Shown here in pieces: positions 3,560 to 20,420 of a stretch of DNA of 64,000 nucleotides. The position numbers and the translations under genes are program-made. The notes under the pieces are model-generated. The model was not told the origin of the DNA. It made no database searches and worked only from the letters and a program-made list of their open reading frames with translations. Within the stretch, counting starts at the first letter, position 1. Each line of letters opens with the position of its first letter. The stretch covers positions 4,672 to 68,671 of the forward strand of contig MU619369.1 in the NCBI GenBank assembly GCA_025201805.1, written 5' to 3'. The stretch comes from Parasitella parasitica NRRL 2501 (Eukaryota; Fungi; Mucoromycota).

Positions 3560-5113
3560 ATGCCTAAAATCAGACCTGTTGTAACCTACTCATTAGCCGC
3601 AGTCATTGTTGTTTGGGTGATGCTTGGCGCTATCACATTGCCAAATGCTACTCGGTGGTTTAGAGGGTCAGGAAACTTCATAGTAGAAGGTATGGATTGC
3701 TGTAAATGCAATGTGCATGTATTAATATGTAAGAAAGACATTATTTTTTTTAATGTTAGTAAGCCAGTTACAATTGGCAATGCTGTTCCGGTCCAATATG
3801 CTCAAAAAGAATTCAGAAACAACATCTTTTTGGTTGACAATTCTCCAGAAATTTCCAAGGAAGGATTACAAGTATAGTGGGTAGCTTGAATGGTCTCTAT
3901 ATATCTAACGTCCAAGTATTGATAAAATAGGGGATCTTGTATAATAGAGGCGAAGCATGCGCTTTGCATTTTCCAAATGTCTCAACATTTATCACTGACA
4001 GCAATATTTCGAAAATCGCTTTAATAGAACAAAGTACTAACTGTTATTTGATTGATAAAATCGTGAATGCTGAAAGAGATGGGGCCATAGCTGCTATCAT
4101 ATTCGATAACGGAACATCTTCAAATCAGCAATCCATGGTAAATATATTCAATAATTAAAGTAACTGGAGAGTGTATGTTGATCCTCTTATTAGGGAGTGA
4201 TGCCAAAATCTGTAAAGATTCCTACATATTATGTGAGTCAGGATACTGGTATCTCAATGATAAATGATCTGGAAAATGCTGCCAAAGCCAAGCAGCAAGA
4301 AGGAGCAACTCAGTTCATGATTCGAGTCGATCTGATGCCTCCTAGTAAACCACCACTGGATCATTGGCAGTTTGCATTGATTATCATGGGTGCGATGCTC
4401 GTTGCCAGTGTTATTTCCATATGTAAGTAGCATCTGTTATGCCAATATTGTATTCAAATATTCTTCTTTTGCAAGCTGCTTTGCAATGCCACATGTGGCG
4501 CATAGCTAGAGAACGGCGCCAAGAAGAGAATGAGACACTAACGCTGGCAGAACAACAGCAGCTGACAGCCGATGAAAATTACTGGAGAAACATTATTGGA
4601 CAGCCACCCAGACTTATGCCACAACCACGAGCTAAAAAACAGCGTTTGGAACAAGCGCTTGTGGATCTATTGCCTACACGTGTATATAAAGACAAGGAGA
4701 TCGTTGGTGGCGAAGAAAAGGTGGATTGGAGAAAAAACACCTCAGTTAATTCATTAGAGACAGCATATGAGCCATCCAGCTGTGTTATCTGCTTGGATCC
4801 TTTTGAAAATGGTAATACCTTGCGGCGGTTGCCTTGTAACCATGAATATCATCGAGATTGTGTTGATGTTTGGCTTACAAAAAAATGCGGCTCATGTCCT
4901 CTTTGCTTGCATCACATCCAAATCCCAACAGTGCCTGATGAAATTCACGCGCAAGAACTAGCAGAAGACGATTACTATGACACTGGCGATATAGCTACAA
5001 CTTGGCAAAGTCTGACTAGAGATGAAGAGGTTTTGCTTCGACAGCATCCTTTTGCTTTCCATCCCACCCCATCATCAGCTGCATCATTTGGAAATCCTTA
5101 TCCTCCTGCTTGA
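3560..5113 (+). CDS. Second PA-TM-RING-H2 E3 ubiquitin ligase (tandem paralog), multi-exon
   Basis: Hydrophobic N-terminus; PA motif KIALIEQ..C...DKIVNAERDGAIAAIIFDN; TM FALIIMGAMLVASVISI; RING-H2 CVICLDPF...LPCNHEYHRDCVDVWL..CPLC. Confidence 0.85.
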
Positions 5114-5415
5114 ATACAGCCATAGTATAATTTTTCTGAACACTCTTTCTCCAAAGCAAAATGATTAAAGAAATTTGCGATTTGCAGAACAGGCTATTCT
5201 TTATATAAATGACTTGAGTTCTTATAATACTTGCAACATCCTTATAGTGATACTCGGAATGGACCTTTACGGACATGCAGTATTATACACAGTACCTTGT
5301 GAGCTGATCCTATTTAAACGCATTCATACTTGACGTATGATTCTCAGAACAAGTGTCAAGATTGGGGATTTCTGTCAACGAGAAAGGTTTATTTTTAAAT
5401 TGACGATCTATTCTT

Positions 5416-5898
5416 CTAATCTTCACTACCACCCAATGCAGGTAGTGCAGGTAGTGCAGGTAAAGTTGGAATACCGCCCAAGGTAAATCCTGTAAACGGA
5501 TCCAAAGCAGGCAATGGAGGAAGCGCTGGTAATTCTGGAAGGCCTGGAGCAGCTGGAGCAGCTGGAGCAGGAGGGACTGGCAAGGCAATAGGCAAGAATT
5601 GTGGAGCAGCTGGGACAGGAAGGCCAGGAAGTCCTGGAGGCGTTGGAAAAGCAATGCAAGAAAAATCGGGCGTGAGCGATGGAGGAGATGATTTGGCGGC
5701 GCAAGCGGGATCCATTGACCCAGGAGCACAATTTACTGGTGATGCTGGTGGTGCTGGTGCTGGTCCTGAGGCTGGGGCACCTGGGGCAGGTTGTGTTCCT
5801 GGAGGACATCTTTTCACCAACACTGGAGCTGCTGATGCTTGATGGAAGGTAGCTAAGATAGCCAGGCAGTATACAGATAAATAGATAGATACTTGCAT
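5416..5898 (-). CDS. Secreted Pro/Leu/Ala-rich preproprotein A (160 aa), intronless
   Basis: ATG at 5898; signal MQVSIYLSVYCLAILATFHQASA; pro-segment APVLVKR; four Cys in the mature part including C..DPAC; LPx repeats; ends LGGSED; TATAAAAA at 5954-5961. Confidence 0.85.
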   Translation of the reverse strand: MQVSIYLSVYCLAILATFHQASAAPVLVKRCPPGTQPAPGAPASGPAPAPPASPVNCAPGSMDPACAAKSSPPSLTPDFSCIAFPTPPGLPGLPVPAAPQFLPIALPVPPAPAAPAAPGLPELPALPPLPALDPFTGFTLGGIPTLPALPALPALGGSED

Positions 5899-6710
5899 TT
5901 TCTTGATATATTTAGTTGTAAAAAAAACAAAGATATTTGGTAATAAAAAGGTCTTTTTATATACAAAACATACAATATGTGTACAGTCTCTTATCGTCAG
6001 TGGGTGTAATGGAAATATTATACATTGCATTAACAGAAACAAATACAACTTTCTGACCAAAGAGCAATATTCAATGTACAATATTCTGTGCAGAACTAAC
6101 ACTTGTATACCAATTGTTGATGGAGAGGCGTTGTGACATAATAACCGCTCAGTTCATCGTAACGAAACTGAGGGCGATCATTTTTGTCTTTGACTTTCAC
6201 ATGCTGTTGATCTCTTATTTATTTTTATCATACTCTACAATTACTGGCTCGTGTCACTTTTGCTGGATTCTCTTGGCAGCAAAATAATACTATAGCACAA
6301 ATCTGTATATTCGTCTTGCATATTTGAAATGCAAGCTACACTAAAATAAATTGTCGATCCATACAAATACTGCAGCAGTAATCATTTAAGTCTCCTCATT
6401 TCTGCTCAAGGATGTAGTGATTTCTAAACCTACCAAACGCCGAGAAGTAGCGTATAGATACATTATATAGAGGGAAAAAAAGGTAATGGTCCCCTGTGTG
6501 ATTCTTATCTTTGGAATATTCTTTGTTCATTTAGGCGTACATGATACATAAACTAAAAAAAGGTTGCTCAAAGGCACTCCCTGAAGGTACGTTTTCACAG
6601 CGACAAACTGTTCCACATGGACGATAAATGTTGGTATTCTAAATTTATAGTTTTTATGTGGTTTTTGCATCATTTTATTAAACTTGTTTGTAAATTAAAA
6701 ATAATTATGT

Positions 6711-7112
6711 TTAGGCTTCGTCTTCGTCTTCTTCCTCTTCATCTTCTTCGTCCGTCTTTTTGGGCTTTGGAGCAGGAGCTGGAGCATATTGAGGTGGATA
6801 GGGCGAAGGTGGACCAGGAGCAGCGTAAACTGGAGCAGCAGGAGCAGCAGCGGCTCCAGGTAATGCTGGAACTGCTGGGACCTTAACAGCTGTTAATGAT
6901 GCCAATAATGGTGAAAGCACAGTGCTGGGATCAACATTTGGTAAAGTAGGAAGAGTTGCGGCTTGTCTTTTGTTGAAATCCATTCGACGTTTATTAGAAA
7001 TCACTGATCTTTTGCCACCGTTGGCTATCACAGTTTTACACAGAGCTTCTTGTACTAATGTGGTGTAGATGGCTACAACCACTAAGAAAGTAATAGTCTT
7101 CAAGCTCAACAT
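6711..7112 (-). CDS. Secreted Pro/Ala-rich preproprotein B (133 aa) with acidic tail
   Basis: Signal peptide; three dibasic sites (KR, KRR, KR); Pro/Ala body; tail DEEDEEEEDEDEA; TATA at ~7208-7215. Confidence 0.85.
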   Translation of the reverse strand: MLSLKTITFLVVVAIYTTLVQEALCKTVIANGGKRSVISNKRRMDFNKRQAATLPTLPNVDPSTVLSPLLASLTAVKVPAVPALPGAAAAPAAPVYAAPGPPSPYPPQYAPAPAPKPKKTDEEDEEEEDEDEA

Positions 7113-7800
7113 TATATATATGTTCTAGTAAATATGTGTATGTAATGTGTTAGTTAAGTATATGGAGATGAAAGGTAATGCAATCTTTAAAACGCAATGT
7201 GTGCTTATATTTATACTTAGAAATCCGTATTCAGCCAAACAAACGGGGTAGATCTCGAGCTAATGCTGCTTTCCTACTCCGTTGTCTGCAGTTTTCTTTA
7301 TTAAAACACTGCCAAGATTAGAGCAGCATGATGCATGAAGATCGTTTTTTTTTTTTTTTTTTTTTCATATGCTGATAACCCGTTTTTGAGTACCACATTC
7401 TTTTATTTCTCTTAGCATTAATATATGCATATCTGATGTTATCTTCGACACATCTCGTACACTTTGACGGTGACTACAGACAAAACGCAAGGAGTCCACC
7501 ATAAGTGCAAGTATTTGGGTGCCAAACCCATATGCGTAAGGAAACTGATTGATACGAAGTGGTCTAACACGGCAGTATCACCCAGCGTGGATGTTTTAAC
7601 AGAAATGACCGAGGTAAAGCACTTAACGATATTTCATATTCACATTTACCAAATGACATACATTATTGTATTATTTTTAAAATTTTTTATTTATTTATTT
7701 TGAGCATCTATATATAATTGGATAGTAATAGTAATAAAAAAATAAACTCTGTATTTTGATGATACAAATGAAATGAAGTTTTTAATATTGGCTAATGATC

Positions 7801-8286
7801 TTAATCTTTTTCACCACCACCACCTAACAGGCCAGCAACAGTGGTTGAAGCATCGGGGATGGTAGGAAGCACAGGAAGTTCTGGGAGTCCTGGAACACCT
7901 GGAAGTGCTGGCAATGTTGCAGGAAGGGCAGTTGAGAGGTCAGGAAGTACTGGTGCTGCTGGAACGGGCACACCTGGTAAACCAGGAAGAGGTACAGCAG
8001 GAGCGGCAGGTGGAGCTGGGAGAGGTGGAATTACGACTCCGGGAACTGCTGGAGCAGTGTATGGAGGAGGAGGGGGAGGAGGACATGCTGGATCTTGGGG
8101 ATTTGCTGGGTTGGGGCAAGTTTTTTGTCCAGGAGGAGGAGGAGGAGGGCCAGCAGCAGCATTTTGACGGCTTTGAAGCTTTCTTAAGATACGTTTATCT
8201 TTGATTTCTCCTTGAGCAGAGACTTGCAGCAAACATGCGAGGGTTGCAACGATGGCAAAAAGAGTGTATGTGAGAGCAGAGCGCAT
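7801..8286 (-). CDS. Secreted Pro-rich preproprotein C (161 aa)
   Basis: ATG at 8286; signal MRSALTYTLFAIVATLACLLQVSA; basic pro-region KDKRILRKLQSR; poly-Pro; C..DPAC; LPx repeats; ends LLGGGGEKD; TATA at 8366-8373. Confidence 0.85.
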   Translation of the reverse strand: MRSALTYTLFAIVATLACLLQVSAQGEIKDKRILRKLQSRQNAAAGPPPPPPGQKTCPNPANPQDPACPPPPPPPYTAPAVPGVVIPPLPAPPAAPAVPLPGLPGVPVPAAPVLPDLSTALPATLPALPGVPGLPELPVLPTIPDASTTVAGLLGGGGEKD

Positions 8287-9099
8287 CTTGTATCTTTGAA
8301 TTTGAAAGTAAGAAAGATGGAAAGAAAGGAAGAAAAAAAACAATAAACGAAAAGAAGGTTGAGGGTTTATATAAGATTACCAGGCGTTTTCATATGAGAG
8401 GTGCGTACGTCGTCATTTAACGCTAAATGCATGTCAAATTCTTTGTTCCCCCATTTTCAAAAGCATTGACTTGTTTCTCGGCCTTCTGGCTGTATTTCTC
8501 CTTTATATACCATACATATATTTACATCGAATGAAAAAAAAAGGGGTCGTGATGTTATGAGACGTAGTTCTGGGTCGTTTTCGTCTTGGAACACAAACGT
8601 TAATAGTCTCATTTTTCGAAACCAACATTATATCGATTCGAAAAAAACATTTATTCGCAAGTGCATATATCGTATGGATTAGCTTCTTGACTGTCAAGTA
8701 ACTCTGCCTTGCATGTCTATTTGTATGTAGCAAACAAGTAGCAGAAAGTTGTTGCAAGGAGCTGGATCCACTGCTTTGGTCATGAGCCCTTTTTTCGTCT
8801 ATATCTATAATATATCCAGGTATTTGTTTGCCACTGCGCATCATATCAACGGAGATCCTTACGGGATGGCTAGATAGAAATATATTTATATGTAAATCAA
8901 AAACACAAGGTAGATCATATTTGATAAGGGGGGTGTTTAGATTTTTATGCATCTCGCCCCTGAGATTATCGGCTGTGGATCATTTTGATGGTTTTGTATG
9001 GTGTCAATTGTATGCAGTAGGCTTAAAAACAAAATTTTCATCTTTATTTCAAAAACAAAAAAAGAAAATAACAAAAAATTGATGCTGCATAGACATACT

Positions 9100-9480
9100 T
9101 TAATCTTCATCTTCCTCATCATCTTCACCGCCGCTTGGTTTACCACCAAGATTCGGAAGAGCAGGCGCTTTGGGTAGTGTTGGCACAGCTGGGACTGGAG
9201 CAGTTGGAATTGCAGGTAACTGAGGAAGTGCCAGGATAGGGAGAGCTGGCAAACCTGGTATAGCTGGTAAACCTGATGGTGGTGGTGGTGGTGGTGGTGG
9301 GCCTCTTGGATCATAGCCACTGGCAAAATATTCCCGGTGATGTCTTCCCCTCTTGATTAGCTTTGATTTTGAAAGATGCATCTTTGTACGACTTGTGCCA
9401 GCTGCTGAAACATAATGCAGCGAGGAGAACAACAGTAGGCTAACAAGGGCCATCGTTGAAAATAAAGAAAGGATTTGCAT
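9100..9480 (-). CDS. Secreted Pro-rich preproprotein D (126 aa) with acidic tail
   Basis: ATG at 9480; signal peptide; pro-region AGTSRTKMHLSKSKLIKR; P8 run; LPA/IPG repeats; ends LGGKPSGGEDDEEDED; TATA at 9536-9543. Confidence 0.85.
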   Translation of the reverse strand: MQILSLFSTMALVSLLLFSSLHYVSAAGTSRTKMHLSKSKLIKRGRHHREYFASGYDPRGPPPPPPPPSGLPAIPGLPALPILALPQLPAIPTAPVPAVPTLPKAPALPNLGGKPSGGEDDEEDED

Positions 9481-10182
9481 GTTTGTACAAGTATTATTTG
9501 TTTGTAGATATCGAAAAAATAAACGAAAAGTTTCATTTTTATATACCTTGACAGAAATTGGTTTCTGGATTGTGGAATGAATAAATAGACTGTATATATT
9601 GATTGAAAAATTACTAATGAAATAATATAATACACCCTGTCCATGTATTTCATCTCCTTGGATACAATGGGTGCTCCTAATTTCTGTATGATCTTCTGTG
9701 TTTATCATTTTTTCATTATGACACAATTCTTGCTCAATATTCAGGGGATTGACACTATTGTATACATCATACAGAAATTTTTTATTTGATAAACATTAAT
9801 TATTATTAAATTCTTCTAGGCTTTTTTTTTTTTAATTTATAGCATAATATACAACTTTTGTTCCACGTGCTGCTTTTAAATCAAATATGGTCGGTTTTCG
9901 CCATACAGTATACCAAGATTAGGTTCTGTTATTTTTAATATGTATCCCTCGTCTGGCATTGTCTATTTATACACCCACCGACTCGAGATAGCACTTATTT
10001 AAACGCATATGTATGCATATTCACGGAAAAAGAGCAGTAATGAAGGGATATATAGAAAAGATCGACAATCAAGTGTAAGCCCATCATGAGATGGAAAATT
10101 AATTTATTGTTGTAATTTGGAAACATCATATACAAAAACTGCTTTTACAATGGATTTGGATTGCTATATACGCCTAACAGTT

Positions 10183-10401
10183 TTAGTCATCATCAGGAGG
10201 TTGCCCACCAAGCAAGTTTGGAGGAATAACACTAGCGAAAGCTGGGAGCTCGGGAAGAACAAAGCCTCGGGCAGCACCACCAATTTGAGATTCTTGCTGT
10301 CTGTCTGCTGAGTCTTCTCTTTTTGCGATAATCGATGCAGTAGGAGCTGCATAAAACAGTGGAAGAGCGCAAACAAAAAAAACGATTAAAAGCTTGATCA
10401 T
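10183..10401 (-). CDS. Small secreted preproprotein E (72 aa)
   Basis: Signal MIKLLIVFFVCALPLFYA; pro-segment APTASIIAKR; LPELPA; ends LLGGQPPDDD; TATA at ~10479-10485. Confidence 0.8.
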   Translation of the reverse strand: MIKLLIVFFVCALPLFYAAPTASIIAKREDSADRQQESQIGGAARGFVLPELPAFASVIPPNLLGGQPPDDD

Positions 10402-11383
10402 AATTACTTCTTTTTCTTGAGCAGATACTATATCCTTGAAAAATATATGTGAAAAAAGAATGTTTTGTACAAAGATGCTTTTATACTGTCTTTCGAATAG
10501 GGTTTTTCAGGAGAAAAAGAGAGAGTAAGATACACAATACATTTAGATATGCATGAATTTAGCTCTTCTCCCTAAAATACGAATGTATTTCTACATATGC
10601 TGAATTGAACAAGTTATGCTATGTACAGTAATGTTTTCTTTGTGATGAATACATTATAGCAAAACCTCGGTTGGTATTATTATGTGTTAGTAGGTTACTA
10701 ATATACATTTCATTGATTCTCACTGACATACATATTATGTGCAGGGTAAATAGAGTCTGTACTAGTCTTTTTGCATCCAAATGGTGTGCTTTGCAAACGC
10801 ACAGAAATTTTTTTCAGATAAAAGTCTATAGTTTGCATAGTTATTACCTAAAATAGCGATTATGCATATATCTTGAATACTTTCGATTATTATAGTCAAA
10901 ATTTACATTCTTGAGGTCAGATTTGACAAGGTGTGTGTGTTTTCAATCCAGCTCACCCCAAATGTAAATTAAATTAAGCCCGCGGGTGATTAAGAAGCCA
11001 CGGCATCTATTTAGTGAATAATAAAATAGCATTTTATTATGTGTAAGTGTTCACTTTCTTTCAAGACAGCCAAAAAATAATACTCCAAAGATGTAAATGT
11101 CGCAAAAAAAAAATGCGTTTGCAATCGGACAAAACAAATGGTAAATGCGTATTCAAAAGGTATTTTTATTTATGAACATACACTGCAATGAAATAGAATG
11201 TAGTGCTATTACATCCTCAAGCTGCAATTTCGTGGCGGTGTCAACGGAATGACTTGGTTTTTAAGTGCATCGATTTGTAGTTTATGTGGGAATTCAGCCA
11301 ACCAAAGGCTACTTTTTTGAATTAAAAACAAGCTTCGTGTCTCTTTTTCACTTTTCTTTTATTTTCCAAAACATAAAACAACA

Positions 11384-12829
<1,446 letters not shown>

Positions 12830-12976
12830 GTTGTAATAAAATGAATAGAGGTGTGTTGCCATGCTGTTACATGGAAATTTCATGCACACGTGATAAAATA
12901 AAATGCAGCTTGTAATCAACTTGATCTTTTCCTCTTTTTTTTTTCGTTTTTTCTCCATACAACTTCATCAACCAAG

Positions 12977-15900
12977 ATGTCCGAAAAACGTAGCATAAAG
13001 ACCAACAATGGCGACGAGAAGAGTAGTAGTGTACTTTCAAGACCGCCTCTGAAAAAGAGGTTCGTGTTAGGATCCGGTACAACATCGACCGTTAGAGATC
13101 CGCACCCACCAAAAAGACAGGCGTTTGCTAATGTAGGAAACACCCAGATTAATCCCCTATGATTTGATCCGTATTCATCAAACTACCATAGAAATTGCCT
13201 GATAATCTGTCAAAGAAAGAGCTGCTGGAACACATGTATTCAGTCAAAGTAAAACCACTGACCCCAAGTATTGACCGAAACTTAACCACGTATGAAATGT
13301 AGAATGCTTACATTCAAGAAAAGCAATACTTGGGCCAATTGAAAGATAATGCCGCTGAAGCAAATGCGCTATATGGCGCTATTAGGTTACAATTTACGAT
13401 GGTAAGGATATTTTATTTTCTGATCTGTTGAACAAATCGCGAGAAAATGCAGGAAACTTACCACTACTTTCATTGCCATAATCACTACTATGGCTGTTGA
13501 AGCTCCGCGATGAACTTGCTGCATTTCCTGCGATTGGCAACTTACCAGGTATTATATCATCAGCATGCAGTCTTGACAATGTTGACGTTTTAGTACAATC
13601 ACATAGGCGAGAGTGAAAATAGCAGCATAGCGAATCAATTGAAGCAGGTGTGCTTAAAAATCACTGAGAAAATCCAAAGTTGGAACGCACAAACGAATCA
13701 ATTGATGTCGGCCGAATTTCAAAGCGCAGGTAGATTGAGCAAAGTGAAGTTTGGCAATATTTTTCCAGGTTTTTTTTTTTAAAAAAAAAAAAAAAATGCA
13801 TGTAGATTTGGAGAAGCAAGGCCAGACCTTGTCAAACTATATTCGATTTGATATGGAGCAGCTTGTAGCTTCGGATCCTGGGACCACCGTCAATTCTCTC
13901 AGACAAGCAAACGAAACGAAATTGAGTCTCATAGCAAAGACCACGAGCGACATTAAATCTACTCTTGGCCACCTTGAGAAATCAAACGATTTACTTGAAA
14001 ATTGTGTACAGTCTATTGCTTCCATTGAAAAGCGTCAAGATCGACTGCAAAGCGATGTGGTCGCCTCTGCACTTGGCTCCCTATCGACATCCACACCTGT
14101 CGGCGACAAAGAAGTAGACATGACAGAACAACCAGATGAACTACCGCAACGCACTCAAATGGACAAGCTAATTGAATGTCAACAGCTATTGGCATCTCGT
14201 AACCAAGAACTGGCCCAAAATCAGCAGGACAGAGAAGAGCTACATTCTAGACTTGATGATCTTCTGGATAGATTAGCAAGACTAAGCAGCGATTACATCA
14301 AATATAATTCAATTTATGTCAATCATTTGCAATTTATGGATGAATTAGAGTGCAATCTGGCAGATTACTACGAGCAAAGGAGGATCCATTTACTGAAAGA
14401 AGAGGACATTTTCTCAAGAGAAAGGGAACAATTGGTTAACCAACAAAAGTCTGAAATGGCGTCAAGAGAGGCCATGTTCGCAAATGAAACAAAACGCTTA
14501 CAAGAAACCTTAACCCGGATTCGTCATAATCGTGATGAGCTGCAACACGTTTTCCAAAGACGCGTGATGGAAGAAAAGGAAGCGAGGGCGTACAATGACC
14601 AAATAATAAAGGTCGCCGACGAACAGCAGGTACGTGGAAAATATGCATATTTTGTGTTGCCATAGAGATTATATATACAGACGGTGGTTGTGACCAATGT
14701 GCTATTTTAGAGCCGCATGGTTGAATTGGAACAAGATGTATTACACAAGCGCCAAGCAATGGACACGGAGACATTACTGCCAGACGATTATCTAAACTAT
14801 CGTAAGTTGAAACTGCAGATAGAGTAAGTTTTAATTTACTGGCGAATGTGTCTTATCAGAGCGAAGCATATTATTTATTATTACTTGCAGGAAAACACAT
14901 GGCATCTTGCATGGTTTACGGCAGCACAAACAAGTAAATAATGCCCAGCGTGTTATGGATTCGCCACTCATGGACATATTAAATTTACTCATCCTACACA
15001 GACAGCAGCTAGAATTGCTGATTCTTTTTTACGAAAACGTTGGTGTGCTTGGTTTGGCATACAAAACAGGAGAAAACTTACACGCGCGGTTTATTTTTAG
15101 ACTGAATTGGACCTTTATGCCCAAATGGATTACGACGGCAGCGCCATTGAACGCCGAATACCCCTTATACAACGTCAGATCAATGATAAAAGAGCCCACC
15201 AACAAAAGCTGCAGGCAGAGATAAGCAAATTTGTATCCTCAAATGCAAAGCTGGCAGACAAAAAGCATGAAAATGACATACAGTACGCACAGCACCGACA
15301 TCAAACCCAATTGCATGAGAAATCCATCTCGCATTTAGATGAGAAAATAGCATCAATCGAAGCCGAAATCGTGAGTTTATGCTTTCTTTTGTTTCTGAAA
15401 ACCAAAACAAAAAAAAAAGCTCCAATGATTCATATATCGTGAATATAGATGGAAAAGGAGAAGGACCTTGGACAATTAGAGACCAATGTGGAACATTACA
15501 GATTGACATTTGATGATATTTCTCAGGAGAGCAATGAGCTACAATCGAATTATGAGAAATACGAATCGCATTTGAGCCAGCTGCTAGATATGGCAAAGGA
15601 AAAAAACAAGATTTTAGAGCAGGAAACGCTGCTCGTCCAGCAAGCCAAGAGCGAGCATGAAAAGTTTCTGAAAAGATGGAATTTGATCCAGCAAGGCGAA
15701 AATCCAGCGTCGCAAGAGTTAATTGATGAAGTGGAGGAGCTTCGGGTACGTTTTGATGGTTGCACATAGACGACGTCGCATTTACCAAAAGTCAACAGGC
15801 ACACTTTAAATGCAGTGCTTGCAAGACTCGCACCAGGGAATGTATTTTGACTAGCTGTATGCATACATTCTGCAATGAGTGTATAAGAATTCGATTGGAA

Positions 15901-15981
15901 ACCAGACAGCGAAGATGCCCCTCTTGCGCGATTACCTTTGGAGCCTCTGATGTCAAGGGTATTTGTTTGTATGGCAAATAA
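12977..15981 (+). CDS. BRE1: Bre1-like coiled-coil C3HC4 RING E3 ligase, multi-exon
   Basis: N-terminal PPLKKRF; long coiled coils; C-terminal RING CSACKTR...CMHTFCNECIRIRLETRQRRCPSC...FGASDV, typical of Bre1. Confidence 0.8.
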
Positions 15982-16175
15982 AATAATATGACCCCCTCCT
16001 TTTTTCATCTTAGACAAAACCAATGATGATGAAAACAAAAATTCCTTCTCGAGTGCCTGAACACCTCCTTAATAGTTTGTGTAATTTTATGCACTAAAAA
16101 CATATATAAATGGCCAAGTTCCTTTCTCGTTTTTTTAACTGCCCTTTTTCTGGATAATCATATTAAATTCTAAAA

Positions 16176-16424
16176 ATGAAATTATACGCTCTTATTTTGA
16201 CCATTCTTTCTATCCAAATTGCTCTTGTTTATGCCGCTGAACGCAAAGCTCAACTTTCTCGCCGCAATATTAAAAAATATCTCGCAGAAGAAACTACCAT
16301 CGAGGAACGTTCAATTGATCATGGTTTGTATCTGATAAAAAAGTCAGTGCGTGCATAGAAACTTACTCGTTGGTCTCTTTTAGACAAGCGTGGTTCCGAC
16401 AGATGCCCTTGGATACGTTGTTAA
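16176..16424 (+). CDS. Small secreted prepropeptide F (63 aa, 2 exons); predicted mature peptide GSDRCPWIRC
   Basis: Signal MKLYALILTILSIQIALVYA; pro-region AERKAQLSRR...; predicted 60-nt GT-AG intron at 16324-16383; exon 2 gives DKRGSDRCPWIRC*; TATATAAA at 16103-16110. The intron is inferred; the unspliced frame stops at 16358. Confidence 0.7.
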
Positions 16425-16749
16425 ATATTTGCCAGCACTACTATCAATGTCATTGACATATGTACTATTAGATCCATGTAAAATTCCTTGAGAAATAAAT
16501 GTCCCCTGAACGAGGGCTATCATGTAATAATAAAATACTTTGTAACATTAGCCCTATTTTAGAATGAGTCACTACGGGAGGATTCAGATCCAGGAGTGAA
16601 CACATTTATACAGACTAAATATTGGCTTTAAACCAGACAAGTAAAAAGGAGAAACTTGTAATATGTGTATATCTAGGCTATAATCCAGCATAATGGGGTT
16701 TTGTCTCTCTTTTTTTCCATCTCTTTTTCCATCCTATTTAACACATATT

Positions 16750-16968
16750 ATGAAATCGTCCGCATTATCACTTCTTGTGTTACTACTGTCATCGTCTGCC
16801 ACTACTGTTATTACTGCACTTCCAGCGCCAGAGCCACAGCAACAGCCAGCCATTATAGCCCCAATGGACATTGCAACGCCAGTGAAGCAAGATACTGACC
16901 AGATAAACAGAATTCTTCATGAAGGCACACTATTCCTGAGTTTCCCTGATAACGGTCCAGAGGAATAA
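16750..16968 (+). CDS. Small secreted protein G (72 aa)
   Basis: ATG at 16750; signal MKSSALSLLVLLLSSSATTVITA followed by LPAPEP; acidic end DNGPEE; no KR site. Confidence 0.7.
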   Translation: MKSSALSLLVLLLSSSATTVITALPAPEPQQQPAIIAPMDIATPVKQDTDQINRILHEGTLFLSFPDNGPEE

Positions 16969-17312
16969 ATTAATAATAAATCTACATTTTTCACATCGTC
17001 CATGTACATTGCTATATTTTACCACATTTATTAACGGGGTCAATTTTTTAATTTGTATAAATAAATGTACCTTGCAAATTGTCTTTGTGTATAAACATTC
17101 CTTCAGTATCAAGCATGGTCAGCGCCTTGAAGTTTTTTAGTGGCTAGGGGTTCATATTACTTTTCATCATACTAGACGTATGAAAAAAGGTTGCTAAATT
17201 ACTGCCACATACCAACTGATAGTACTATATAAACACTTACATTCATGCCCTTTCTTTTTTTTTTTGTTTTTCTGTCCAAGTATTCCATACACAAGCTCAT
17301 TCGTCCTTATCG

Positions 17313-17963
17313 ATGCGCATTTCATCTGTAATTTTGTCAATTAGCATAGCACTTGGTGTAGTTTACGCTGTTGAAAGTAATCACGAAAAACAAACACTGA
17401 TTTCTGATTATGGACTAAAGAAAAGATCGACACTGATAAAACGTGATTATGCTACGACGTTAAAATATCTGCGTGCTGCCATGGCCAGTTATCGAAAAGA
17501 TGCCGTGACTCCACCTTCTGCTGCATTCGTGCAGTTAGAACAGAGTTTGTCTCCTCAACCAGTCAAGGCAGCACAACCACCGCCAGAAGTAGTGGACCCT
17601 GTTTGGGCGGTAGAAACAGAACCCATGCCATCACCTTCTAAGCAGCAAGTTATATCATCACCAGCTACGCCTGAACTACAAGGTCCTCAGCATTTGGATG
17701 CACCTGAACCGTCTACGCCTGATTGGGAAGCCTCTTCTCCTTCCCCCGACTCGTCCTCTTCTTCAATCGATTCTGCTACACCCCCTGAACAGCCTGCGAA
17801 TGAGAAATCTGCCTCTCCAGAATTAGTCAATGAGAGAAAAGAAAAGAGCCTTCCTATCAACGCAGATATTGAAGAAGATGATACTTTTGATCCAGAAGAA
17901 GACCCAGATGATGTTGACGACCCTCCCATTGTGAACGGAGTAGCAGTAGATAGAGAAGAGTAG
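17313..17963 (+). CDS. Secreted Pro/Ser-rich preproprotein H (216 aa) with acidic tail
   Basis: Signal peptide; KKR and LIKR sites; Pro/Ser/Glu-rich body; D/E-rich C-terminus; TATATAAA at 17226-17233. Confidence 0.85.
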   Translation: MRISSVILSISIALGVVYAVESNHEKQTLISDYGLKKRSTLIKRDYATTLKYLRAAMASYRKDAVTPPSAAFVQLEQSLSPQPVKAAQPPPEVVDPVWAVETEPMPSPSKQQVISSPATPELQGPQHLDAPEPSTPDWEASSPSPDSSSSSIDSATPPEQPANEKSASPELVNERKEKSLPINADIEEDDTFDPEEDPDDVDDPPIVNGVAVDREE

Positions 17964-18852
17964 TTCGTTAGCCAATAAAATTGCATGCCATCATATCATA
18001 CTATTCGGCTGTTTGTCCTGCACATAATCAAATGAGTGTAGACACTAATGCTCTGACATACATGCTATCACATCATTCTCTCCTATAGTAATGCAGAGAA
18101 CTGTTGTCTCGTATATTTGGTGAGAAAGATTCACAGGTTACAGAAAAGAAGGGGTTTGTAGAGTGAGTGTGATGTGGCAAGGTAGCATTATGGTGTCTAA
18201 AATGCAAACACTAGCATAAAATGTTATCCTGCACGGTCAATCCAATATTCTTTGTTTGCCTCAAGTATAAAGAATATATGGCAGATTAGGTGGGTGTGTT
18301 TGTTTGTTTACCTCTTGGAACAATAAGACTTGTACATGTACACTATATAACTGCCTTTTGCGCCTTTTCGTTTTGGAGTATCAAGAGACACGGCAGACGT
18401 AGGCTTCGTTGGAAGGGGAAAGAGATGTCTTTGCTCCTATGTTTGATATTTGATAGTATCATGATGGTTACGGTGATATTTGCTGATACTTTTGCTGGAT
18501 GAAATGCGTGACAACCCACGCCTCCCCCCCCCCCCTTGACCCCCTTTCACTTTCATTGATCGATGTATGCTTGATGATTGCTTTTCACAGGCTATAAACT
18601 TCAAGAGACGTTTGGGTCGATATATATATATGGACAGGAAAAAACTTGTATCAGGAAAATGCTACGTAATATTTCTTTACATTGTGCCTTTAGCTTATTT
18701 ATACCTCCCCCGTATACATGGCGCCAATCCTGGTTAGCGGGAAGGGGGGGGGGCAAATGCAGCGATATTTTGAGGAGAGAGCCTTCGCCGAAAACATATA
18801 AAAAGAGGGACTTTTGAATGAATATTCAATAAACCAACATCTCTACAACAAA

Positions 18853-19290
18853 ATGACAAGAATCATCGTCTTATTGTTTGCCATGGCCATTATGGTCTCA
18901 TCATGTCTTGCTGCTGGCAGTATTCAGAGAAAGGCTCGCCTTTCAAGAAGAGAAGTTCCCGATGCAAAGACTGCAGTCAAATTGGCTCAATTTGGCGTGC
19001 ACAACATGCTGGGTATTGCAACAACGACTACAAATCAAGAGTTACATCTTTTCCAACCAAAGACACCACCAGCCACTGCTTCTGGAAATACCGGTGCTCC
19101 TGCTCTAGGTAATGCTGCCGCTACTCAAGACAAAACTGCTGCTGAAGGCGATGCTGCTGCTTCTACTGAAAGCAAAGCTACTACTTCTCCTGCCAAGGAC
19201 GGCGCTGCTGCTGATGTTGAGGATGGAACTGATGCTACCGCTGAAAGTGGCGATGTTCAAGACGAAGCTGGAGAAGACACTAGCTCATAA
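18853..19290 (+). CDS. Secreted Ala/Thr-rich preproprotein I (145 aa) with acidic tail
   Basis: ATG at 18853; signal MTRIIVLLFAMAIMVSSCLA; pro-region AGSIQRKARLSRR; acidic Ala/Thr/Asp/Glu C-terminal half; TATAAAAA at 18797-18804. Confidence 0.85.
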   Translation: MTRIIVLLFAMAIMVSSCLAAGSIQRKARLSRREVPDAKTAVKLAQFGVHNMLGIATTTTNQELHLFQPKTPPATASGNTGAPALGNAAATQDKTAAEGDAAASTESKATTSPAKDGAAADVEDGTDATAESGDVQDEAGEDTSS

Positions 19291-19586
19291 GTTTGAAAGA
19301 CACTCTAAAAGTCTGATTACATTTTGTTACTGAACATACATATACTCGAACAAATTAATTTTAATACTATAATAAAAACATTTTCACTTATAAATGTTTG
19401 CTGTCACCAGGTGGAATAACTGAGCATGCATGCAAAATTCATGATTGTCCAATTCAGTTCAACCACATATGGGCTTGCCTGGAATGACCTGATTTCCGGG
19501 TCGGTCCTACACATGTTCATTTTAATGGAAACAAGTGATGGTTCAATTTCCTCTCTTTTTTTCCTTTAAACCTCATACATAACATA

Positions 19587-20420
19587 ATGGACAAACTTCA
19601 AAAATACTTGAAACCGCATCAGATCGTAGCCCTGATACTTTACCCAAGCACGGTGTTTATAGCATTTATATATTCCACCATTGGACACCCACCAGATTCC
19701 TATTTCAGTAACAAGCGTAATATTTTCAATATGCTCTTTGTCAAAATTGGGTGGTTCTGGGTGACGCTGGTGTATTTTGCATATCTGTATCTAGTTGCGT
19801 CAAAGCGCTTACAGAATACGCAAGCGTTTGTAGGAGGTGCTTCACGCTATGCACTAGTGACGTTATACTGGTACATCATGACACAATGGCTGCTGGGGCC
19901 AAGCTTCATTGACAGAGTCTACGTATTGACGGGCGGTAAATGCACTTCCTTGCTTCAAGATACTAAATTGAATGCAGATTTGGCCATGGTAGTTCAGCAA
20001 CAAGTGTGTCGTAAGATGGGAGGTCAATGGACTGGCGGACACGATGTTTCTGGACATTGTGTTTTGCTGATTCACGCAAGTTTGTTTTTATGGGAGGAGT
20101 TAAGCTGGATGTTCTACAATGCAAAGCCATTTATTCAGATGAAGACACGCGAACGTGCCCAGTACTTTTCTGTGGTCAGCGTCTTGTTGCTTGCGTCATT
20201 GTGGTATTTGATGCTTTTCATGACCGGTGTATACTTTCATGGACACTTTGAGATCCTATCTGGCTCGATTTTTGGGATATTGGGCTGGGCATTATTAGTA
20301 CGTACAAATTACGCAAAAAATGTAAATTTCATATGTTTATTTTAATCAAATTTATAATAGTATCTTGGTGTATTCCCTAGGCTTCCAGAAATTGGTCTTG
20401 CGGCAGCAGCAATTCAATAG
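19587..20420 (+). CDS. SCS3: FIT-family acyl-CoA diphosphatase (Scs3/FITM2-like)
   Basis: YFSNKRNIFNMLFVKIGWFW; WLLGPSFIDRV; GGHDVSGHCVLLIHASLFLWEE; T.VYFH. One 3' intron, with final exon YLGVFPRLPEIGLAAAAIQ*. Confidence 0.9.

Follow-up and report, generated by a model that had tools for sequence, protein, structure and literature searches.

The stretch of DNA analyzed here, referred to below as the window, comprises 64,000 nucleotides of low-GC fungal DNA from a 32.8-Mb assembly (contig MU619369.1 of GCA_025201805.1, positions 4,672 to 68,671). It contains two arrays of small open reading frames (ORFs), g1–g5 in tandem on the minus strand and g6–g9 on the plus strand, with a zinc-type ADH gene and a long RING-ended gene between them. 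An earlier reading of the nucleotide sequence alone (the sequence-only reading) had taken these nine ORFs to be one cluster encoding a single diverged family of small secreted proteins. The results presented here confirm that the nine small ORFs are real, conserved genes. By sequence, g1–g5 are one paralogous family with a proline-rich core. The claim of one diverged family was not borne out for the remainder; g6, g7, g8 and g9 are four separate families.

Conservation of the nine ORFs

All nine ORFs listed by the sequence-only reading are present (Table 1). With g8 as the query, 29 homologs were obtained from Mucor and Parasitella, that of Parasitella parasitica at 79% identity; the other sources were Mucor circinelloides, M. 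lusitanicus, M. ambiguus, M. fragilis, M. velutinosus, M. bainieri, M. plumbeus and M. hiemalis. These matches place the source of the window in the Mucoraceae, near Parasitella. Ortholog DNA was taken around these g8 homologs and around the relatives found by an exhaustive profile search with g1/g3/g4. Collinear orthologs of all nine genes are present in Parasitella (loci L011 and L016) and in M. circinelloides (L012), and orthologs of g1–g5 occur in the same order in a further Mucor (L005). All nine frames are open and collinear in at least two other species, and in at least three for every gene except g7. The ratio of nonsynonymous to synonymous substitution (dN/dS), calculated by the Nei-Gojobori method in the proposed frames, is well below 1 (Table 1), and purifying selection acts on the stated frames. 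The mean column identity of g4 is 81% over four species. More distant orthologs of g1 are P0004/L017 and P0020/L004.

The proteins encoded by g7, g8 and g9 are annotated at NCBI with exactly the window sequences, and the Parasitella orthologs of g1–g5 are annotated genes. No exact-sequence match to g1–g6 as read here was found in the protein collection. These six may be mis-modelled or unannotated in the window genome, and exon 2 of g6 is easily missed. Small genes at this locus are often mis-modelled, as indicated by fused, missing and merged models: the NCBI annotation of Parasitella (L011 4122-8425) fuses ADH with BRE1 in a single 1063-aa model and omits g6 and g7, and that of M. plumbeus (L020 8894-9680) combines g6 with g7 in one 98-aa model.

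Within the window genome, the g1/g3/g4 profile, g8 and g9 each match only themselves, g8 and g9 being single copy. The exhaustive profile search with g1/g3/g4 returned three true relatives together with unrelated L-P-x-L-P low-complexity proteins. A protein-homolog search gave no matches with g3 as query and two Logan matches, one of them new, with a g4 profile. These blanks say nothing on distribution, because low-complexity words filled the candidates and the annotated orthologs of Parasitella and M. circinelloides were left unscored.

Table 1. Positions of the genes and their conserved neighbors in the window, with dN/dS against orthologs and dibasic sites as conserved among orthologs
Feature	Position	Strand	Description	dN/dS	Dibasic sites and residues that follow
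g1	5416-5898	-	160 aa ORF	0.14-0.22 (0.14 vs Parasitella)	(K/R)R then C-P-P-G-T; distant L004 copy with extra Ala before Cys
g2	6711-7112	-	133 aa ORF	0.09-0.20	N-K-R-R and (N/S)-K-R
g3	7801-8286	-	161 aa ORF	0.10-0.22	D-K-R then I-L-R-K-L-Q
g4	9100-9480	-	126 aa ORF	0.15-0.22	K-R then G-R-H
g5	10183-10401	-	72 aa ORF	0.28 (vs Parasitella only)	K-R then E-D-S-A-D-R
g6 exon 1	16176-16323	+	49 codons + 1 nt		L-S-R-R and E-(K/E)-R
g6 exon 2	16384-16424	+	joint 16322>16383 (cut +1), spliced in RNA contig; spliced g6 is 62 aa		
g6 unspliced ORF	16176-16358	+			
g7	16750-16968	+	72 aa; annotated at NCBI	0.04 (vs M. circinelloides)	
g8	17313-17963	+	216 aa; annotated at NCBI	0.12-0.19	invariant K-R; D-Y-A-T-T-L after it in 13/14 sequences
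g9	18853-19290	+	145 aa; annotated at NCBI	0.38-0.56	RR then (D/E)-x-P-D; KR in M. plumbeus; two most distant copies vary after RR
PA-RING gene, RING exon	4439-5113	+	conserved neighbor of the g1 end of the array		
ADH (zinc type) and RING-ended gene taken as BRE1	11815-15981	+	conserved upstream neighbors of g6–g9		

Transcripts from the locus

RNA evidence came from one public RNA run (X7), whose contigs were placed on positions 14000-19400 only. One contig, over 14000-16506, has five GT..AG introns of BRE1 removed, followed by the 60-nt g6 intron at 16324-16383 (GT..AG), which proves that g6 is transcribed in the sense direction and spliced. A second contig, over 16648-18018, spans g7 and g8 and has introns 17012-17070 and 17172-17240 removed. 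Both introns have CT..AC ends when read on the plus strand and thus the canonical GT..AG on the minus strand, indicating an antisense spliced RNA over g7–g8. The longest ORF of this antisense RNA is 99 aa, lies antisense to g8 and is not open in all orthologs. A third contig (18839-19282) covers g9 on one strand or the other. For g1–g5, X7 holds 37% of the sampled words of 5300-10500, close to the share of the five coding regions. The sequence-only reading had named a lack of transcripts as a ground for rejecting it; RNA was seen for g6 in the sense direction, and RNA contigs cover the g7–g8 and g9 regions.

A single RNA contig spans 15798-16506 without interruption, joining the last BRE1 exon, whose stop lies at 15981, to g6, which starts at 16176; at 16506 it terminates in adapter sequence. 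The continuity could be due to overlapping untranslated regions or to read-through, or two abundant transcripts could have been merged in assembly. The DNA runs X3, X4 and X5, from other strains, are identical to the window over 14000-19400, except for a 1-nt homopolymer deletion at 18524 in X4 and X5, and therefore carry no population signal for this interval. When the regions upstream of the nine genes were screened for k-mers, only generic AT-rich and TATA-like words emerged, and no shared motif conserved in relatives was found.

Predicted secretion and maturation

The hydrophobic leaders claimed by the sequence-only reading are present at the start of all nine proteins, as judged by a crude signal-peptide test (an uncharged hydrophobic 10-mer plus small residues at -3/-1) that about 10% of the other window ORFs of at least 60 aa also pass. 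The leaders alone thus prove little for ORFs of 60-72 aa. They are 19-27 residues long, end in cleavage-like sites (A-S-A, V-S-A, V-Y-A and C-L-A) and are kept in orthologs. No second hydrophobic segment and no HDEL/KDEL was found in the nine proteins. None has a C-terminal hydrophobic glycosylphosphatidylinositol (GPI)-attachment signal; the proteins end in acidic residues or Cys.

A KR or RR site follows the leader in eight genes, as had been claimed; the exception is g7. In alignments of up to 14 orthologs these dibasic sites keep their position within variable surroundings, with a conserved block directly after them (Table 1). The proposal that the genes encode pre(pro)proteins with Kex2-type sites therefore held up, in that KR/RR is conserved across species and stands before conserved predicted mature N-termini. 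The kexin/furin-type P-domain (PF01483) is encoded at two loci in the window genome, above the curated cut-off. The predicted pro-pieces have a net charge of +1 to +7, and the predicted mature parts of -1 to -24. The claim of eight acidic ends was correct as to acidic tails in g1–g5 and g7–g9, but not to the last residue: g2 ends in A and g9 in SS, and g6 ends in Cys.

No domain was recognizable in any of the nine proteins in the sequence-only reading. Consistent with this, no Pfam family reached the cut-off for any of them, a match to DEC-1_N being sub-threshold. A PDB sequence search and a search for structural neighbors in the Atlas yielded nothing meaningful, and no paper on these proteins was found in a literature search. 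Matches to already characterized families, another ground on which the sequence-only reading would fall, were thus not found in Pfam, PDB or the literature.

The g1–g5 paralogs

The clear paralogs are g1, g3 and g4, with BLASTP values down to 3e-8 (with composition correction, in a tiny database) and 40-50% alignment identity; g2 and g5 resemble them more loosely, in architecture and motifs. In the shared plan, the leader is followed by a short piece of net positive charge up to a conserved KR, and then by a core, Gly-Gly and an Asp/Glu tail. Between the KR and the core there is often a polyproline run, and g1 and g3 have a Cys-bounded loop there. The core has Pro at every third residue, with triplets of Pro, a small and a bulky residue that are clear in g1–g4; g5 is short. 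Proline spacing peaks at lag 3 in g1–g4 (p 0.0005-0.017 against shuffles). A small residue (A, G or T) follows the Pro, and a bulky residue stands just before the next Pro in 48% of cases, compared to 5% at the other position, giving a repeat of the form P-[AGT]-[LVI]. This spacing would fit a polyproline-II helix, which has three residues per turn, with Leu/Val/Ile in one stripe. The Atlas structure model of g3 is of low confidence and disordered.

The individual members vary this plan. In g1, the short pro-piece ends in KR directly before Cys-Pro-Pro-Gly-Thr, and the protein has four Cys and ends in GG-S-E-D. The cationic pro-piece of g2 contains the conserved NKRR and NKR and leads to an Ala/Pro-rich core and a long Asp/Glu tail. 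In g3, the leader is followed by the conserved DKR, polyproline, a conserved two-Cys loop, the triplet core, a Gly run and an acidic end. The g4 protein has a cationic pro-piece up to the conserved KR, a basic/aromatic N-terminus, polyproline, the triplet core, GG and an invariant acidic tail. Finally, in g5 the E-D-S-A-D-R that follows directly on KR leads to one or two L-P-x-L-P-like units and then to GG and an acidic end.

The RING exon of the distant genome L004 is only 49% identical to that of the window, compared to 75-87% for Mucor and Parasitella, indicating a clearly more distant species. In L004 (2-100), the last 30 residues encoded by the gene upstream of the g1-like one are nearly pure Asp/Glu, like the tail of g2. 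On the strength of this g2-like tail, the g1–g5 array may also predate Mucor.

The g6–g9 genes

Beyond the pre-pro part, g6–g9 have no similarity to g1–g5 or among themselves. A K-A-(R/Q)-L-S-R-R piece after the leader is shared by g6 and g9, and g4 has a similar R-L-(I/S)-K-R. Profile-profile comparison (hhalign) of the g4, g6 and g9 pre-pro regions gave probabilities of 42% and 32%, and a common origin of these regions is possible.

Exon 1 of g6 encodes the leader and a pro-piece with conserved L-S-R-R and E-(K/E)-R sites, and exon 2 encodes KR and then a 10-residue C-terminal peptide ending in a Cys-Pro-Trp-Ile-Arg-Cys loop before the stop. The intron position and the terminal C-P-[WY]-[IF]-x-C are kept in all six of the species examined. 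Measured from the last dibasic site to the end of g6, the peptides are about 9-20 residues long across species. It is probable from these features that g6 is the spliced precursor of a short C-terminal disulfide-loop peptide, Cys-Pro-Trp/Tyr-x-x-Cys.

In g7, which has a leader and no dibasic site, the C-terminal half is conserved and ends P-D-N-G-P-E-E; a distant ortholog (L015) has RR and KR. In g8, the leader is followed by KKR and KR, and an invariant KR lies directly before a conserved helix. A variable Pro/Ser-rich middle then precedes a near-invariant acidic C-terminus of 33 residues ending R-E-E. The AlphaFold model of g8 (14 sequences) is mostly disordered, with a predicted local distance difference test score of 57 and a helix at 46-62. 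The M. hiemalis ortholog (L014 10001-10699) carries in its pro-piece an additional, extremely basic insertion of about 60 residues, rich in Lys/Arg/Asn/Ser, before the invariant KR. The g9 protein has a leader, the conserved R-L-S-R-R, a conserved unit of about 45 residues and a variable Ala/Thr/acidic tail. In Parasitella (L011 11607-12074), and in that species only, the whole unit is tandem-duplicated with each copy behind its own RR, as expected if the unit after the RR is the product.

Gene order in relatives

The window also contains a FIT/SCS3 gene. The long RING-ended coiled-coil gene is taken as BRE1, a name drawn only from its RING and the positions of its orthologs. The order in the window and in Parasitella is PA-RING, g1–g5 (minus), ADH, BRE1, g6–g9 (plus), FIT, UBP. 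In M. circinelloides it is FIT, ADH, BRE1, g6, g7, g8, g9, g5, g4, g3, g2, g1, all on one strand, followed by PA-RING. M. plumbeus has ADH, BRE1, g6–g9, F-box, FIT, UBP, and M. hiemalis has a different RING gene, a DAO gene, ADH, g6, g8 and a g9-like gene, followed by unrelated genes. A more distant JGI genome (L015) has ADH and, further along, a g6-like gene, g7, g8 and g9.

These orders indicate two arrays with different anchors. PA-RING adjoins the g1 orthologs in L004, L005, L012, L016 and L017 (the last a metagenomic contig). ADH lies upstream of g6–g9 in L011, L012, L014, L015 and L020, with an annotated BRE1 model between them in L011, L012 and L020. The g6–g9 array is thus anchored to ADH-BRE1, and the g1-type array lies next to PA-RING wherever context was seen. 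In M. plumbeus, no g1–g5 was found in the 2.9 kb upstream of ADH or the 10 kb downstream of g8; M. hiemalis and L015 have no proline-triplet ORF up to 10 kb from g8. The adjacency of the two arrays holds in some lineages only. The sequence-only reading was therefore right that the genes are clustered, as they are in relatives, but the nine form two arrays that are not neighbors in M. plumbeus or M. hiemalis. It had also described both arrays as pointing away from the intervening ADH3 and BRE1 genes. This is seen in the window, but is the result of one inversion of the ADH-BRE1-g6–g9 block, which separates M. circinelloides (L012 4340-18445), with all nine genes on one strand, from the window (5416-20345). 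M. plumbeus has a right junction like that of the window (g9 to FIT and UBP).

Discussion

The results are consistent with two neighboring arrays of Mucoraceae-restricted genes for small, disordered, secreted proteins that are predicted to be processed by kexin, with g1–g5 having a wall or surface role. Taken as a whole, this explanation has about an even chance of being correct. Each protein would enter the endoplasmic reticulum by means of a cleavable leader. Golgi kexin would then trim at the conserved KR/RR, removing the net-cationic pro-piece and freeing a net-anionic product. A mature g1–g5 protein would consist of a hydrophobic rod-like triplet segment, a Gly-Gly hinge and an Asp/Glu tail. 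The walls of Mucorales are rich in chitosan. The acidic tail could hold this cationic wall, and the rod could face outward or self-associate; PMC12239770 makes no mention of wall chitosan. By analogy, the g1–g5 products would most likely be wall- or surface-associated coat proteins with a structural or surface-active role. The g6 peptide is the best candidate for a diffusible signal or an antimicrobial peptide. The products of g7, g8 and g9 are probably small acidic disordered proteins whose conserved short motifs bind a ligand or partner. A more specific proposal, and a quite unlikely one in full, is that Mucoraceae, apparently without hydrophobins, coat their walls or aerial structures with a hitherto undescribed class of amphiphile, a kexin-released (Pro-small-bulky)n polyproline-II rod whose anionic tail docks on chitosan, and that the g6 loop peptide signals.

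Several points weigh against the explanation as a whole. Sense-strand expression was seen for g6 only, and the contig over g7–g8 carries two minus-strand introns. For g1–g5, expression is suggested by a 37% share of words over the whole interval 5300-10500. Secretion and cleavage are inferred, with the leader test also passed by about 10% of ORFs. The g7 protein of the window genome has no dibasic site, and the charge model fits g3 poorly, since its predicted mature part is nearly neutral. The g1–g5 products are assigned to the wall or a coat by analogy only. A hydrophobin search of the window genome gave no match, a weak result in that control genomes gave nothing either.

It could be argued that the ORFs, or some of them, arose by chance in AT-rich DNA between genes or lie in non-coding transcripts: short ORFs with hydrophobic starts are common in the window (about 10%), spliced antisense RNA spans g7–g8, and g1–g6 as read have no exact entry in the protein collection. 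This is extremely improbable and largely refuted. The nine frames are open and collinear in at least two other species, dN/dS is well below 1 and the g6 splice lies on the sense strand; moreover, g7–g9 and the Parasitella orthologs of g1–g5 are annotated. It is also very unlikely that the proteins are not exported, with N-termini that are uncleaved anchors or targeting signals for work in the secretory pathway, vacuole or membrane. The almost invariant 33 C-terminal residues of g8, ending R-E-E, and the P-E-E end of g7 could be sorting or retention motifs, but the leaders have canonical small-x-small sites and a length of 19-27 residues, and the proteins lack a second hydrophobic segment and HDEL/KDEL.

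The remaining alternatives accept export and differ as to the purpose of the products. An unlikely explanation is that they serve as weapons or effectors, either as antimicrobial or anti-competitor peptides or as factors directed at other fungi or at hosts, and do not belong to the surface of the fungus itself. Clusters of lineage-restricted genes for small secreted proteins are a common mark of effector and antimicrobial loci, and the g6 product terminates in a disulfide loop of short length. Parasitella parasitica, which parasitizes other Mucorales, is the closest relative found and keeps all nine genes. However, these genes are also retained in saprotrophic Mucor species, dN/dS is low, unlike the fast diversification common in effectors, and the predicted products are anionic whereas antimicrobial peptides are mostly cationic. 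It is likewise unlikely that the cluster mainly makes signaling peptides (autocrine, developmental or mating), with the g6 loop, the g8 and g7 C-termini and the g9 unit as receptor ligands and the proline-rich parts as carriers. The short motifs are very strongly conserved inside otherwise variable proteins and are flanked by kexin-type sites, and the duplicated g9 unit of Parasitella resembles repeat precursors. Kex2-processed repeat proteins (KEPs), with roles unknown, exist in early-diverging fungi (PMC6339444). On the other hand, KEPs are defined by repeated peptide units, of which the window genes have none, g1–g4 are conserved along the whole repeat core and not just in one motif, and the sexual pheromones of Mucoromycotina are apocarotenoids, not peptides (PMC6339444).

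The explanation favored here, secreted kexin-processed proteins with a surface role for g1–g5, invites comparison with several known systems. KEPs, Ustilago Rep1 and Candida Ece1/candidalysin share with the window genes the KR/RR sites, together with a signal peptide and small extracellular products (both only predicted for the window genes), and kexin is encoded in the genome. Parasitella g9, with two units each behind RR, adds to the likeness with KEPs. The window genes differ in having one N-terminal pro-piece instead of repeated peptides split by KR. Identical or near-identical units separated by KR/RR were not found in any window gene, two units being seen only in Parasitella g9, and the genes have no sequence similarity to Rep1, Ece1 or alpha-factor. 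Membership among the KEPs was rejected in view of the missing repeat units.

Hydrophobins, HsbA and hyphosphere proteins are also small, secreted (predicted for the window proteins) and partly hydrophobic, with a proposed surface role. In contrast to the 8-Cys pattern and compact fold of hydrophobins, the window proteins have 0-4 Cys and are predicted to be disordered or polyproline-II. They were rejected as hydrophobins on the Cys count and the lack of a Pfam match to PF01185/PF06766; no Pfam match to HsbA was found either. Canonical hydrophobins are absent from three surveyed Mucorales (bioRxiv 10.1101/2022.08.19.504535). In M. lusitanicus, surface roles are assigned to HsbA proteins (PMC13537970), so that other surface factors exist in that species. 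Further candidates were rejected in the same way: PIR cell-wall proteins, with no PIR family match in the Pfam scan at E up to 1; GPI-anchored wall proteins, as there is no hydrophobic C-terminal tail; and plant-type extensins and proline-rich proteins (PRPs), as there are no Ser-Pro(3-5) or PPVYK repeats and no extensin Pfam match.

Proline-rich matrix proteins include the plant extensins and PRPs, gamma-zein with its amphipathic polyproline-II (VHLPPP)n, and insect cuticle proteins with AAP(A/V) repeats. The g1–g5 products resemble them as low-complexity, putatively secreted proteins with periodic Pro repeats that fit polyproline-II, and a link to a polysaccharide (chitin-type) matrix would follow by analogy. 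The differences are the Pro-small-bulky unit, without Ser-Pro4 or Tyr cross-link motifs, the few Ser/Thr, the terminal Asp/Glu tail and the lack of homology. Effector clusters of Ustilago maydis are likewise tandem arrays of small lineage-specific genes for secreted proteins (predicted as such for the window genes) without known domains, but the window genes are also present in saprotrophic Mucor, are under purifying selection and are syntenic across genera, unlike the rapid turnover of the Ustilago clusters. The window genes make up new families of a well-known type of locus, the cluster of genes for small secreted proteins in fungi.

Among the Mucorales are fungi that cause mucormycosis and others that are used in industry. 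Little is known of their small surface and secreted proteins, and canonical hydrophobins seem to be missing. The locus offers five conserved, uncharacterized families in a compact region that could be deleted as a unit: the proline-triplet proteins with acidic tails, a disulfide-loop peptide precursor and three small acidic disordered families. If the proline-triplet proteins are indeed parts of the surface or wall, they would account in part for the way in which hydrophobic or protective surfaces are built in this order. Should the g6 peptide prove bioactive, it would add a peptide signal to a group that is known for trisporoid pheromones and thought to rely on apocarotenoid signals.

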